A stretch of DNA of 58,984 nucleotides, taken from the NCBI RefSeq assembly GCF_001194135.2, contig NC_069004.1, positions 24,675,047 to 24,734,030 of the forward strand, written 5' to 3'. A model generated the notes under the pieces. It saw only the letters and a list, made by a program, of their open reading frames with translations, ran no database searches and was not told where the DNA came from. Below, in pieces: positions 27,111-46,520 of the stretch (position 1 is the first letter of the stretch; every line of letters begins with the position of its first letter). This DNA comes from Octopus bimaculoides. Its lineage: Eukaryota. The position numbers were made by a program, and so were the translations under genes.

Positions 27111-27747
27111 ATGAATCGGACGATCAGGAATGTAATAGTGTTTCATCTGGTTTATTCCTCATTTTCTATGCTGTTAGGTTACGCTGCAAAACTGCCTTGT
27201 AAAGATGATCCGAAATATAGATGCCATCCTACAAAATCGAACCTTTTTGTTCGTTGCACCGGCGGGAAACTCTACCAGTTCTTCTGCCCCATTGAACTTA
27301 ACTTCAATACAGTTACACAAACGTGTGATTGGCCGAAAAAAGCCGATTGCAGCTGGTTAGTTGGGAACAACGTTGAGGGCAATGAAACGGCAACCCCTAA
27401 AAACAGTGATGCGGCCGGAGTCAGAAAAATAGACAAAGATGGTGCTGTGAACGGTGTCGATGGTGATGGCAATGATGATGGTGATGATGATGGTGGTGAT
27501 AGGCGTAACAACTATTATTATTATTATCGTCGAAACAAAGAAGGGCGAGGCAAAAGCACGACCAAAAACTGGTCAACCGGAACAGAATCAAAGACAACTA
27601 CGAAGCGTCCTTGGTGGAAACCGAAACAGCGCCCTCAGGCAACAAGGTTCCCGCCCATACCAACAAACCAGGAGAAGAAGATAGCCAGAAGTCGTCCGGC
27701 CTACAGAAACGGACCCCAGGAGAGAGTGAAGCCAATTTGGAAAGGAT
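27111..27747 (+). CDS. Cda: Chitin deacetylase gene, first coding exon: putative signal peptide, six-Cys chitin-binding (CBM14/peritrophin-A-like) domain and low-complexity linker
   Basis: ATG at 27111 follows an ATG-free leader. MNRTIRNVIVFHLVYSSFSMLLGYA is signal-like (basic n-region, hydrophobic core). It is followed by CKDDPKYRCHPTKSNLFVRCTGGKLYQFFCPIELNFNTVTQTCDWPKKADC, whose CPxxLxFN...CDWP motif is typical of CBM14. The GT donor at 27748 (AT|GTTAGT) is phase 1 and matches the acceptor at 45543. An alternative in-frame acceptor (TTTTCTATGCTGTTAG|G at 27177/27178) means the true start could lie in an unseen upstream exon. Confidence 0.82.
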
Positions 27748-28005
27748 GTTAGTATCAAAGTTCCTTATTTTTGCTTTTCTTCCATTTTGTAAATTGGAGT
27801 TGTAAACGTTGTTGGCATTTTGTGTTTTCGATGTCGTGGTTGCTGTTGTGTGGTTATGTTGTAGTTGTTATTGTAATAGTGGTGGTTGTGGTCGTAGAAA
27901 TTGCTGTTGTTGTTGTGGCTGCTGTTGTTGTTATTGTTATTGTGGTTATTGTTGCTTTTGTTATGTTATTGTTGTGGTTATTATCGTTGTTGTTATGGTT
28001 GTTGT

Positions 28006-28402
28006 GGAGGCGCAATGGCCCAGTGGTTAGGGCAGCGGACTCGTGGTCGTAGGATCGCGGTTTCGATTTCCAAGCCAGCCGTTGTGAGTGTTTATTGAGC
28101 GAAAACACCTAAAAAGCTCCACGAGGCTCCGGCAGGGGATGGTGGCGAACCCTGCTGTACTCTTCCACCACAACGTTCTCTCACTCTTACTTCCTGTTTC
28201 TGTTGTGCCTGTAATTTCAAAGGGTCAGCCTTTTCACACTGTGTCACGCTGAATATCCCCGAGAACTACGTTAAGGGTACACGTGTCTGTGGAGTGCTCA
28301 GCCACTTGCACGTTAATTTCACGAGCAGGCTGTTCCGTTGATCGGATCAATTGGAACCCCCGACGTTGTAAGCGACGGAGTGCCAACAACAACAACAACA
28401 AC
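28006..28402 (+). mobile_element. tRNA-derived SINE family C, full length, (AAC)n tail
   Basis: Head GGAGGCGCAATGGCCCAGTGGTTAGGGCAGCGGACTCG; tail GTAAGCGACGGAGTGCCAACAACAAC. Confidence 0.9.
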
Positions 28403-31050
28403 GTTATGGTTGTTATTGTTGCTTTCGTCATGGTGATGGTACCTGCGGTCGTTTTAACCCTGGTTTTTATTGTACCTGTCATTGCTGCGACTATTACCAT
28501 TATTGTTGTTGTACTTGTTATGGCGGCGATGGTGGTGGTTGTAGTCATTTTAACTGTGGTTCTTATTGTATTTGTTATTGCTGCGACTGTTATTTCTATC
28601 GTTGTGGTGATTGCTGTTTTGTTTCCCGCGTCAATCGAACCACCAATCAACTGTTTTAGGTATACCCCCACCGCACCTGACCGAGCACTGCACATTCCAA
28701 AACACAGCATTTCATGTTATGAGATTTACTGTTAAAGTCTGGACATAGTGTTCTCTCTGTACTCTCCAGTCTAAAATTCAATATAACGCTGACACAAACC
28801 AGCCTGGTTGCCCCTAGATTCACAATTCTGTTTCTGAGCAACACTATTGTACGGCTTGTTGCTATAAGGTTTTAGCGCAGCTCTTATCTATGATAAGCAT
28901 GCAATCGGCTGACGAACGAGGCACAATCCACTGGGCCAAGCTGTCGTGAAGAAGCACTCATCAATGTTACGTTGTCAATATTCGAGATATTTAAACGTTT
29001 GNNNNNNNNNNNNNNNNNNNNNNNNNNNNNNNNNNNNNNNNNNNNNNNNNNNNNNNNNNNNNNNNNNNNNNNNNNNNNNNNNNNNNNNNNNNNNNNNNNN
29101 NNNNNNNNNNNNNNNNNNNNNNNNNNNNNNNNNNNNNNNNNNNNNNNNNNNNNNNNNNNNNNNNNNNNNNNNNNNNNNNNNNNNNNNNNNNNNNNNNNNN
29201 NNNNNNNNNNNNNNNNNNNNNNNNNNNNNNNNNNNNNNNNNNNNNNNNNNNNNNNNNNNNNNNNNNNNNNNNNNNNNNNNNNNNNNNNNNNNNNNNNNNN
29301 NNNNNNNNNNNNNNNNNNNNNNNNNNNNNNNNNNNNNNNNNNNNNNNNNNNNNNNNNNNNNNNNNNNNNNNNNNNNNNNNNNNNNNNNNNNNNNNNNNNN
29401 NNNNNNNNNNNNNNNNNNNNNNNNNNNNNNNNNNNNNNNNNNNNNNNNNNNNNNNNNNNNNNNNNNNNNNNNNNNNNNNNNNNNNNNNNNNNNNNNNNNN
29501 NNNNNNNNNNNNNNNNNNNNNNNNNNNNNNNNNNNNNNNNNNNNNNNNNNNNNNNNNNNNNNNNNNNNNNNNNNNNNNNNNNNNNNNNNNNNNNNNNNNN
29601 NNNNNNNNNNNNNNNNNNNNNNNNNNNNNNNNNNNNNNNNNNNNNNNNNNNNNNNNNNNNNNNNNNNNNNNNNNNNNNNNNNNNNNNNNNNNNNNNNNNN
29701 NNNNNNNNNNNNNNNNNNNNNNNNNNNNNNNNNNNNNNNNNNNNNNNNNNNNNNNNNNNNNNNNNNNNNNNNNNNNNNNNNNNNNNNNNNNNNNNNNNNN
29801 NNNNNNNNNNNNNNNNTATATATATATATATATATATATATATATATATATAGAGAGAGAGAGAGAGAGAGAGAGAGAGAGAGAGAGAGAGAGAGAAAGA
29901 AAGAAAGAGACAGAGACACAGAAAGAGATAAAGATGGTTATGCATATACATATATACGTGTGTGTGTGTATGTGTGTATGTCCGGCTTCCATACTTTCTG
30001 TCTACTAAATTCACTTGCAATGTCCAGGGTTACAGTAAAAGACAATGGGCCGAGGAGTCGTGCACTGGAACTGAACCCCAAAATCACGTCGTTGCAAAGC
30101 GAGCTTTTTATCCACAAAGATACGCCTGAGCCTACAAACGTAAAATTATTTTATAATTTTCAGCAGTAACTGTGACAATGCTGCATATTAAATGTGGTTG
30201 CTGATTTCAAAACTTCTTAATCATGGGACTTAGGAAAAGATGGTGGCCCCTCTATATGTAAATAAGTGACTGTTTTTGATTATATGAGTAGTCGAAGATA
30301 CACTTGTCTTGCCAGTGCCAGGTATGATGGTATAATTGTCGGTGCTCTGGCGCCATGACTTTGTATAAAGCGTTTCTAAGTCATGTGTATGTGTAATTTA
30401 AGATAATCTGATGTATATCAATGTTATAGTTTAAGATGGCTGTGTTCGCTGGTAATTCAGTGGAAGAGTGTCATGGGTTATGCACAAAAGCAATAGTTTA
30501 TTGATATAAACTCCTCATTTGGAAACAAGAAAATTAAAACCTGACGGAAAACTTGAGCGACATCCAAACATAAGGGGAGGTAATTTGAATAACTTGAGAG
30601 TGAAATTCTCAAATTAATTTCCACGCTTCAGTGAAGGACAGTCTAATCTTTGCAGACATGAGATAAAATTGGACAAATATTTCGGTTTATTTGAACTCGT
30701 CAGCATAGTATATCTTTTGTAATAACTGAATGTTGTTTCAACAACTCTCCAAATCTCATGCAGTTTCCAACACTCTCATCAACTTGCTTCATTCATGCAA
30801 TCCTTACCGTCACACAGGCACTCTTAACACTGCTTGATCACTTTTTCTGCTTAAATAGTACACTCTACAAAACCGCAACTGTCTCTGCATTTGTTTGGTT
30901 ATCCTACCACAGTCTCGTTGCAGATAGACATGGTATAAATTTTACTACATATATCTCACTTCCTCCAGAAAACCGATTGGTCGGAATACCGTCATATTAT
31001 GCCAATTATCTTTAGCAGCACACACGCTTTACTCCTGACCTATTAGAAAC

Positions 31051-45247: not shown

Positions 45248-45454
45248 CGAAAGGGTGCTGAAAGGTTCTTGGCTTTTAAAAAATACAGCAGGACCAGTTA
45301 ATTATGATTTTATTCAACATATTCCCCCTCAAATTTACACACGCATTGCAGCAGCTCTTCTTTTGAAACCCTTTAAAAGAACTCGGAAGTTTTCGACCTC
45401 CAACCATGCCTTTCGCGACACCCTTAGAACCAGTAACTTTCCAACATCCCCTCA
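45248..45454. mobile_element. Mariner-type MITE with degenerate terminal inverted repeats
   Basis: Left TA|CGAAAGGGTGCTGAAAGGTTCTTGGCT versus reverse-complemented right end GAGGGGATGTTGGAAAGTTACTGGTT. Confidence 0.55.
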
Positions 45455-45543
45455 CACACACACACTCACACACATACACATATAAATTACTTTACAGTAT
45501 GTATCATATTTTTATTAATCCGTTATATTTCTTTTATTTTCAG

Positions 45544-46520
45544 CCTGTGAATCCAGCGATTGCTACCTCCCTCACTGTCATTGTCCCGGTGCGAAAATTC
45601 CTGGTGGATTGTCCGTCCAAGAAACTCCAATGATGGTCATGATCACATTCGATGACGAAATATCCGCAGCTTACTACGGATACTTCCAGCGTCTCTTTCG
45701 TCCGGGCCGCTACAATCCGAACGGCTGTCCATTCCGTGGGGCAATGTACGTCTCTGGTGAAGGCACCAACTACGATCTCGTGTATCCTCTATATGCTATG
45801 GGCAACGAAATTGCCTGTCACACGGTGAGCCATCGCTTCCCGCATACATGGTGGGCCAACGCCAGCTACGAAGAGTATATGTCCGAAATTCAAGGTATGA
45901 AAAATAATTTGATAGAGAAATCCGGAATATCTGCAGAAGACATCAAAGGTTTTCGCGTTCCGTTCCTTCAGCTCGGTGGAGACAACATGTATCGCGCCGT
46001 GTATGATGCCGATTTAGTTTATGACACGTCTATGTTTACAGGCCCCGTTTGGGAGGGCGGTGAAGATCCGATTTGGCCCTTCACGTTGGATTTTGTACCC
46101 GACCAGAAATTTTGTCAGCATGGACCGTGCCCGCAGCGGCAGTACCCAGGCCTGTGGGAAATCCCAGTCCAACGTTGGTATGGAGTCGATGGTCATTCGT
46201 GTGCCATGCCTGATGGCTGCACGTCGACAGCATCGACGGAAGAAGCGCTCCAATTTCTGAGGAAGAACTTCTATAGTTATTACAACAGTAACCGGGCTCC
46301 GCTCGGTATATTCGTGCATGCGCGTTGGTTCCACGTGGAGCATCACCTGGAGGCACTCGATGCCTTTATAGACGAACTAATGCAGCTGGATGACGTCTGG
46401 ATTGTGACTCCTAGTCAAGTGCTGGAATGGATGAAAAAACCTACGTCCATATACGAAATACAGTTTTTCAAACCGTGGAGTTGCGAAGGAGCAATGAAAG
46501 AGGCATCTAGACGAAAGTAA
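45544..46520 (+). CDS. Cda: Chitin deacetylase gene, terminal coding exon: complete arthropod-CDA-like CE4 polysaccharide deacetylase catalytic domain
   Basis: Pyrimidine-rich acceptor TTTCTTTTATTTTCAG ends at 45543. The junction T|CC makes Ser, then CESSDCYLPHCHCPGAKIPGGLSVQETPMMVMITFDD. Motifs: TFDD (45645-45656), HTVSH (45819-45833), GFRVPF (RVPF 45954-45965), YDTSM, WPFTLD, PGLWEIP and NRAPLGIFVH (His 46317-46319). Uninterrupted frame to TAA at 46518-46520. A possible GTAAAG donor at 46517 cannot be excluded. Confidence 0.95.

Follow-up and report, generated by a model that had tools for sequence, protein, structure and literature searches.

Does the stretch of Octopus bimaculoides DNA analysed here, 58,984 nucleotides of contig NC_069004.1 (hereafter the window), carry a single intact gene for a secreted chitin deacetylase (CDA), or do two open reading frames (ORFs) that lie far apart on the same strand only give the appearance of one? 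An earlier note, made from the letters alone, had joined the two ORFs in frame (637 + 977 nucleotides) into a protein of 537 residues consisting of a chitin-binding domain, a linker and a deacetylase, had found the metal triad, the catalytic Asp, the Arg of RVPF and the His of IFVH all present, and had seen no LDLa domain. These points have stood up: the join is borne out by GT/AG signals and by an intron position and phase that are conserved in relatives, the order of CBM14 domain, linker and deacetylase (after a leader) by Pfam, PDB alignments and AlphaFold2/Foldseek, the catalytic and metal-binding residues by their invariance in an alignment, and the lack of a visible LDLa domain by Pfam together with a six-frame pattern scan of the window in which none was found. 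We consider it very probable that 27111-27747 and 45544-46520 are the two coding exons of a genuine, intact octopod gene whose product has a probable signal peptide, a CBM14 domain, a disordered linker and a complete CE4 deacetylase domain. It is a real yet ordinary gene, belonging to a well-known animal enzyme family.

The first ORF (27111..27752, forward strand) encodes 213 amino acids from an ATG start and the second (45609..46520, forward strand) 303. Joining of the exons gives 1614 nucleotides, that is 537 codons and a TAA, with no internal stop. The donor context is ...TGG AAA GGA T/gttagt at 27747/27748 and the acceptor context ttcttttattttcag/CC TGT at 45543/45544, with a pyrimidine tract upstream. 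No in-frame start codon was found between the upstream stop and 27111, and the N-termini of homologues align from about residue 9-12; at the other end, the terminal residues …EASRRK resemble the …DASRKK of the closest relative (P0001), the stop codon following directly in both. There are 15 runs of N in the whole window, five of which fall in the intron (29002-29816, 35494-35518, 38270-38575, 39931-40229 and 43687-44124; 1,883 N in all), most of them with microsatellite flanks. Because neither exon is interrupted by a gap, the reading frame is independent of gap lengths. The coordinates of the gene and of the other features of the window are collected in Table 1.

Independent support for the junction comes from relatives. 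Alignments to the Bombyx CDA8 and CDA1 structures in the PDB both begin at residue 213, which is the junction codon, and a conserved opening, C-x4-C-x-LP-x-C-x-C-P, stands directly after it. The closest relative is a 1.85-kb Logan contig (L001, run ERR12408770) with 82% amino acid and 75% nucleotide identity; its DNA similarity to the window ends about 10 nucleotides upstream of exon 2, and its acceptor is at the same place (ttttcag/CT TGC, compared with ttttcag/CC TGT in the window). The acceptor pattern of ag, two nucleotides and a Cys codon is also present in Lottia (L003), Littorina (L004), Candidula (L002) and one further taxon (L005/L006), and donors following a GGA Gly codon plus one nucleotide were read in Candidula (gtaagt), Littorina (gtgagt) and L005 (gtaagt). 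Because donor and acceptor contexts match in relatives, the position and phase of the intron (phase 1) are conserved on both sides; it interrupts the gene where the W-x(1,2)-G terminus of the linker, closing with a Gly codon, gives way to the first Cys of CE4. For an O. sinensis paralogue, exon boundaries from tblastn put an intron at the equivalent point, splice sites and phase not having been read there. In Lottia, Littorina, L001, L005/L006 and an O. sinensis paralogue one exon, beginning at the same residue, holds the CE4 domain, and in Candidula about six extra introns lie inside it. Full-length Littorina and Candidula proteins (548 amino acids each) have their domains in the same order and align with 95-96% of the model.

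It might be objected that the join is artefactual, either because the scaffold unites exons of two different CDA genes or because the locus is an untranscribed relic that looks intact, and it is the case that the exons are on different contigs of a gap-rich scaffold and that the octopus protein sets searched do not contain the gene. We regard this explanation as very improbable. The exons are consistent with each other in strand, order and intron phase, no stop breaks the frame of 537 codons, and nonsynonymous divergence from the closest relative is far below synonymous divergence. When 120 CDA homologues were compared with the window by tblastn, matches were obtained only at 27.1-27.6 kb and 45.3-46.5 kb, so that the 59 kb offer no competing partner exon. 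The linker encoded by exon 1 contains a motif, [PS]WW[RK]P, that in a set of 121 proteins was found in the window protein and in all ten full-length gastropod proteins of clade A (the gastropod CBM14-CE4 set as defined in the present analysis, to which the CE4 domain of exon 2 belongs), and is lacking from each of the remaining 110 homologues, which include the Octopus CDAs already known; it is also present, in duplicate, in the exon-1 ORF of L005. Because the motif is restricted to the clade of exon 2's CE4 domain, exon 1 belongs with exon 2 and not with another CDA gene. The CBM14 domain of exon 1 is likewise nearer to gastropod members of the clade (up to 55% identity) than to the Octopus paralogues (27-36%).

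A different objection is that the two-exon model, although correct as far as it goes, is incomplete, and that additional small or alternative exons in the intron or in its gaps change the linker or add a domain. In Littorina P0003 there are two short linker exons between the CBM14 exon and the CE4 exon, about 1.9 kb of the window intron is unread, and the linker is too weakly conserved for such exons to be detected by homology; the five intronic gaps may conceal small exons and may also leave contig order or orientation at issue. Against this, exon 1 of the window gene holds the whole linker in one frame, complete with its two conserved landmarks, the PWW[RK]P motif and the closing W-x-G at the donor, and L005 and the O. 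sinensis paralogue likewise keep CBM14 and linker in one exon. None of the 120 CDA proteins aligns inside the readable intron, in which coding sequence resembling a CDA, an LDLa or a CBM14 was not detected. A regular-expression search of the six frames of the window, with about 1.9 kb of intron unread, revealed no Cys/DxSDE-like pattern of the LDLa type, only microsatellite-encoded Cys runs, although the six-Cys expression used alongside was so strict that it passed over the true CBM14, which Pfam detects; Pfam finds CBM_14 and Polysacc_deac_1 as the only domains of the protein, and no relative in the clade has an LDLa or a third Pfam domain. An exon complement different from the one proposed is, on balance, improbable.

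The protein of the two-exon gene may be considered from its N-terminus. Hydropathy analysis reveals a basic n-region (MNRTIRN), a moderately hydrophobic segment at residues about 4-25 (peak 1.85 over 11 residues) and then a polar region, with no second hydrophobic 19-mer in the 537 residues, and the homologues likewise start with hydrophobic leaders followed by a polar region. Such an N-terminus is compatible with a signal peptide, and the protein is probably secreted. The CBM_14 match scores 33.1 bits, compared with a Pfam cut-off of 22.1, and is underpinned by six cysteines (C30, C38, C49, C59, C72 and C80) and by tblastn matches of the CBM14 domains of homologues at 27183-27353. The linker frame is open throughout its more than 130 codons, and the [PS]WW[RK]P motif within it may be a docking or processing site. 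The acidic Asp/Gly stretch and the run of five Tyr residues in the linker (27454-27525) are encoded by simple repeats like the microsatellites of the window.

The second exon encodes a CE4 domain by a number of measures. The Polysacc_deac_1 profile (PF01522) gives 24.4 bits on the exon-2 protein, for which the cut-off is 23.1, and 22.5 bits, slightly below the cut-off, on the full protein, and sequence matches in the PDB were to Bombyx CDA8 (5Z34, E 1.1e-65 by phmmer) and CDA1 (5ZNS, E 2.7e-60). The five CE4 motifs, whose invariance was judged in an alignment of 13 proteins, are set out in Table 1; the functions given to their residues, with an Asp as base, an Asp-His-His metal triad, a stabilising Arg and a His as acid, follow the BmCDA structures (PMC6463723). 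For the exon-2 translation, AlphaFold2 gave a confident model, with a predicted local distance difference test score (pLDDT) of 90.4 and a predicted template modelling score (pTM) of 0.90, and its best Foldseek matches are 5Z34 (TM-score 0.87) and 5ZNS (0.86), the range with 5ZNT being 0.86-0.88, followed by bacterial and fungal CE4 enzymes. Profile match, metal triad (D250/H305/H309), the residues D249, R350 and H471, and the predicted (beta/alpha)7 barrel are all to be found in the one protein. Comparison of exon 2 with L001 yielded proportions of nonsynonymous and synonymous differences (pN and pS) of 0.11 and 0.82 respectively, which indicates long-term purifying selection on the catalytic exon; saturation of synonymous sites (pS 0.82-0.88) leaves the ratio dN/dS without a numerical value.

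What is established of CE4 chemistry, together with the BmCDA structures, suggests a mechanism. The protein would be secreted and tethered by its CBM14 domain to extracellular chitin, a chain of which would be bound in the open cleft of the animal-type CE4 domain. The catalytic domain would coordinate a divalent metal through D250, H305 and H309, and a metal-activated water, with D249 as a base held by R350 and H471 as the acid, would hydrolyse N-acetyl groups of the chitin, releasing acetate and leaving a partly deacetylated chain (chitosan). The parts of an octopus that contain chitin are the beak, radula, sucker lining, gut cuticle and stylet, and no feature of the window singles out one of these. 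Secretion, deacetylase activity and the tissue concerned are matters that we infer.

It is in respect of activity that a further explanation has to be considered, namely that the gene is real but its product is mainly a chitin-binding or chitin-organising matrix protein with little deacetylase activity of its own, or with an activity that depends on partners. BmCDA1 has all of the motifs, yet its activity was undetectable until molting fluid or the protein CPAP3-A1 was added (PMC6463723), and motifs 4 and 5 of the window protein read AMPDG and FVH, the relaxed form seen in animals, as opposed to the microbial DXXD(W/Y) and LXH. However, every catalytic and metal-binding residue is invariant across the clade, purifying selection is strong over the whole catalytic exon, and the nearest solved structure by both sequence and fold is that of BmCDA8, which is active alone, without accessory proteins (PMC6463723). 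A mainly structural role is therefore a minority view, unlikely but with some claim to attention, and the reading of the protein as a deacetylase is retained here.

Several observations weigh against an expressed gene for a secreted, active enzyme and temper the confidence with which it is put forward. Five gaps separate exon 1 from exon 2, which are on different gap-free pieces of the scaffold. Hydropathy was the only measure applied to the signal peptide, the h-region of which is just moderately hydrophobic. Among the matches listed there was no octopus protein for the window gene, the best from Octopus being paralogues at 42-44% identity, and an exact-sequence look-up of the 296-residue exon-2 ORF returned no record, as was also the case for Littorina P0002; the gene may be unannotated in octopus protein sets or may be missing from the database searched. 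Expression, and with it transcription and splicing in vivo, is something that we infer from the sequence. Finally, because BmCDA1 needs accessory proteins and BmCDA8 does not, stand-alone activity is not readable from the motifs.

Placing the gene among its relatives was one of the checks that the earlier note had suggested, and a comparison with arthropod and molluscan CDAs by neighbour-joining (NJ) puts it in a molluscan clade, clade A, with gastropod proteins as its nearest neighbours. The CE4 domain is 65-73% identical to gastropod proteins of that clade (Littorina, Candidula, Lottia 153749, Biomphalaria, Elysia, Lymnaea and others), compared with 42-44% to the annotated Octopus "chitin deacetylase 7-like" proteins and 42-50% to molluscan CDAs outside clade A. 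The window gene fell within the gastropod-containing clade A in 100 of 100 bootstrap replicates, was paired with the ERR12408770 sequence in 100 of 100, and joined the annotated Octopus CDAs in 0 of 100; the latter cluster with a second gastropod lineage represented by Haliotis, Pomacea and Patella. Because the window gene and the annotated Octopus CDAs fall in separate clades, molluscs hold at least two old CBM14-CE4 lineages, both of which are present in an octopod. Among the protein sets and loci searched, the clade-A lineage is otherwise found only in gastropods and in L001 and L005/L006. It is conceivable, and we offer it as a tentative proposal somewhat short of a favoured one, that octopods keep this second ancient molluscan CDA lineage, with its [PS]WW[RK]P motif and two-part gene, as an overlooked, specialised and tissue-restricted enzyme in one chitin structure.

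Two gene models among the relatives call for comment in their own right. On Lottia KB202283.1 (L003) a clade-A gene is apparently split into a 235-residue CBM14 model and the 336-residue CE4 model LOTGIDRAFT_153749 (2802-7329 and 10001-11428); because the window CBM14 and CE4 match them in order and on the same strand, the two are probably one gene. In O. vulgaris P0014 ("chitin deacetylase 7-like isoform X3", 780 amino acids) the CBM14 domain, the linker and the first half of CE4 occur twice in tandem in near-identical form, which looks like a mis-assembled or mis-predicted duplication and inflated the bit score of this protein in the search.

The genomic setting of the gene is that of an octopus. 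The window has a G+C content of about 35% and is rich in microsatellites, and no host protein-coding gene other than the CDA gene is evident in the 59 kb, the rest being repeats, the 15 gaps and transposon remnants. A short interspersed element (SINE) of about 420 bp is represented by 11 heads and 14 tails, compared with fewer than 0.3 expected by chance. We took it to be an abundant Octopus SINE, an assumption that served as a lead only and was then tested by comparison. A translated SINE ORF had one named database match, to an Octopus vulgaris hypothetical protein (E 4e-23). The 20-kb O. vulgaris locus surrounding the gene for that protein gave 96 blastn matches covering 7,002 window bases, among them the full SINE (88-89% identity) and members of further repeat families, and a 40-kb O. 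sinensis locus gave 155 matches covering 8,350 window bases; the best SINE or repeat identity to the loci of these two species was 87-89% over about 420 bp. In contrast, four loci from gastropods and other relatives (about 100 kb in total) have essentially nothing in common with the window outside the CDA exons. The earlier identification of the source as a probable cephalopod can accordingly be narrowed to an octopod, on the strength of repeats common to the O. vulgaris and O. sinensis loci. Rfam and ARAGORN tRNA scans of the window were empty, the SINE head not being recognised as a tRNA. That the DNA is foreign or a contaminant was considered, given a gastropod-like gene, and rejected, since octopus-type repeats lie in the intron and also on the gap-free contig of exon 1 (28006-28201).

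Other repeats are numerous. The reverse-transcriptase pieces of the long interspersed element (LINE) type listed in Table 1, whose closest database proteins carry PF00078, are transposon debris and not CDA exons. Broken ORFs at 12006-12858 (reverse strand) and 35063-35338 (forward strand) have the motifs …NSPDLHPLDYYVW… and …PSDYHLFGPVK…, and one piece has a marginal Pfam match to a PAX-like helix-turn-helix; judged by their motifs, they read like remnants of Tc1/mariner-type transposases. A dispersed repeat has two inverted intronic copies about 3 kb apart (28006-28400, forward, and 31032-31429, reverse), both matching O. vulgaris locus L007 at 14357-14550 with 83% identity. Trinucleotide and purine-rich microsatellites at 5274-6064, 23611-24867, 39657-39930 and 43452-44350 give rise to spurious long ORFs on both strands, encoding poly-Ser/Glu/Lys, poly-Asn, poly-Val or poly-Asp/Gly, and at 43452-44350 the same block stands on each side of a gap.

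Table 1. Features of the CDA gene and of the repeats and gap mapped in the window (positions are those of the 58,984-nucleotide stretch)
Feature	Position	Strand	Remarks
Coding exon 1	27111..27747	+	637 nt, ends in phase 1; start ATG, hydrophobic leader, CBM14, low-complexity linker
CBM14 (peritrophin-A) domain, residues 30-80	27198..27350	+	PF01607 model positions 1-53/53, E 6e-08
Linker, residues 81-212	27351..27746	+	Asp/Gly-rich stretch, five-Tyr run, Lys/Arg/Thr/Pro-rich stretch; ends IWKG at donor
Linker motif RPWWKP, residues 166-171	27607-27624	+	clade-specific; W168 at 27612
Splice donor GTTAGT	27748..27753	+	directly 3' of ...TGG AAA GGA T
Intron, 17,796 nt	27748..45543	+	five gaps, microsatellites, octopus-type SINE copies, LINE reverse-transcriptase remnants
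Polypyrimidine tract and acceptor (...tatttcttttattttcAG)	45524..45543	+	ag + 2 nt + TGY (Cys), as in L001-L006
Coding exon 2	45544..46520	+	977 nt including TAA 46518-46520; residues 213-537, entire CE4/NodB domain and C-terminal loops
CE4 motif 1, TFDD, residues 247-250	45645..45656	+	invariant; aligns to TFDD of BmCDA8/BmCDA1; D249 putative base, D250 metal ligand
CE4 motif 2, HTVSH, residues 305-309	45819..45833	+	H305, H309 invariant; aligns to HSISH (BmCDA8), HSITH (BmCDA1); metal-binding His pair
CE4 motif 3, RVPF, residues 350-353	45954..45965	+	R350, P352, F353 invariant; aligns to RIPF, RAPY; Arg stabilises catalytic base
CE4 motif 4, AMPDG, animal type, residues 433-437	46203..46217	+	M434, D436 invariant; aligns to SMVDG (BmCDA8), AMVDS (BmCDA1)
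CE4 motif 5, FVH, residues 469-471	46311..46319	+	F469, H471 invariant; aligns to FVH (BmCDA8), YFH (BmCDA1); His471 putative catalytic acid
Assembly gap, 21 N	46536..46556		within (TA)n tract, starts 15 nt past stop; 3' untranslated region only
SINE, full copies	34651-35075, 54697-55106	+	tRNA-like head …GGTTCYGGGTTCAGTC…, internal (TA)n/(TG)n microsatellite, conserved tail …CAGCATGGCCGCAGTCAAATGACTGAAACAAGTAAAAGA…
SINE, partial or diverged copies	near 1062, 2414, 6340-6730, 8419-8638, 11631-11828, 19975, 20765-21097, 22195		
SINE, partial or diverged copies (continued)	33357-33606, 35383-35715, 49539-49724, 50521-50883, 57976-58363		
LINE-type reverse-transcriptase remnants, frameshifted	40930-42236 (CDA intron), 4281-4493, 55454-55630	+, -, +	Pfam RVT_1 weak, E 0.002

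What the gene adds to existing knowledge is limited but definite. The earlier note called CDAs less studied in molluscs than in arthropods and fungi. In arthropods, CDAs built in this way have been well described (PMC7953033); in molluscs, CDA genes are already annotated in three Octopus species, CDAs have been reported as minor secreted proteins in the shell matrices of Lottia and Haliotis (PMC3374290, PMC6003135), and in cuttlefish haemocytes a CDA transcript ranked within the top 20 by expression (PMC7551771). A shell-matrix role is not transferable to the window gene because the Lottia shell-matrix CDA, Lotgi1|181237, has another identifier than the clade-A gene 153749. Knowledge of the CDA family as such is unchanged by the window gene, which contributes one more chitin-modifying enzyme to the cephalopod repertoire; the modest new points are the assignment to a lineage, a possible annotation gap, in that current octopus annotations may have missed the gene, and the clade-specific linker motif. 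If expressed, the enzyme would be a candidate regulator of how far a cephalopod chitin structure is acetylated and, through this, of its stiffness, its hydration and the cross-linking of its proteins.

Among known systems, the clade-A proteins of gastropods (Littorina saxatilis V1264_020013/"chitin deacetylase 7-like", P0002 and P0003, Candidula unifasciata P0004, Lottia gigantea LOTGIDRAFT_153749/P0006, and those of Biomphalaria, Elysia and Lymnaea) are the closest to the window protein. They have the same architecture and nearly the same length (548 compared with 537 residues), and they share with the window gene the phase-1 intron before CE4 and the linker motif. The window linker differs from theirs in composition, being Asp/Gly- and Lys/Arg-rich, and the window intron is 17.8 kb long whereas theirs measure 1.8-5 kb; the extra CE4 introns of Candidula and the extra linker exons of Littorina are further differences, as is the host, which for the window gene is an octopod. 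As far as the searches showed, no experimental characterisation of the clade-A gastropod proteins was found. The Octopus "CDA7-like" proteins (O. sinensis P0040, O. bimaculoides P0038 and O. vulgaris P0104/P0014) resemble the window protein in their CBM14-linker-CE4 order, in their catalytic motifs and in an exon layout that keeps CBM14 and linker together and gives CE4 the following exon, but they are without WW[RK]P, have a Ser/Thr/Pro-rich linker and form a separate clade.

Comparison with arthropods leads to a similar mixture of likeness and difference. Bombyx mori CDA8 (5Z34) and CDA1 (5ZNS/5ZNT) share with the window protein the (beta/alpha)7 NodB fold and C-terminal loops, with 32-37% identity over the structure alignment, as well as the metal triad, motifs 1-5 and the relaxed animal-type motifs 4 and 5. 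The domain complements differ, since BmCDA8 (group V) is without CBM14 and BmCDA1 (group I) has both CBM14 and LDLa, whereas the window protein has CBM14 and no LDLa. The architecture of one CBM14, a linker and one CE4 without LDLa is that of arthropod groups III (CDA4) and IV (Cda5) (PMC7953033), and the likeness to insect groups III/IV that the earlier note had remarked upon therefore holds for architecture, and also in that arthropod Cda5 proteins (group IV) are the best non-molluscan matches, at 40-43% in CE4. It does not extend to orthology with insect CDA4 or CDA5, as the NJ tree places the window protein in its molluscan clade, apart from the arthropod Cda5 proteins, which form a clade of their own outside the two molluscan ones. 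Cda5 linkers are also much longer than the window linker and Ser/Thr/Pro/Gln-rich. The combination of CBM14 and CE4 that the window protein has in common with arthropod groups III and IV may be an ancestral architecture rather than a sign of orthology to any one insect group.

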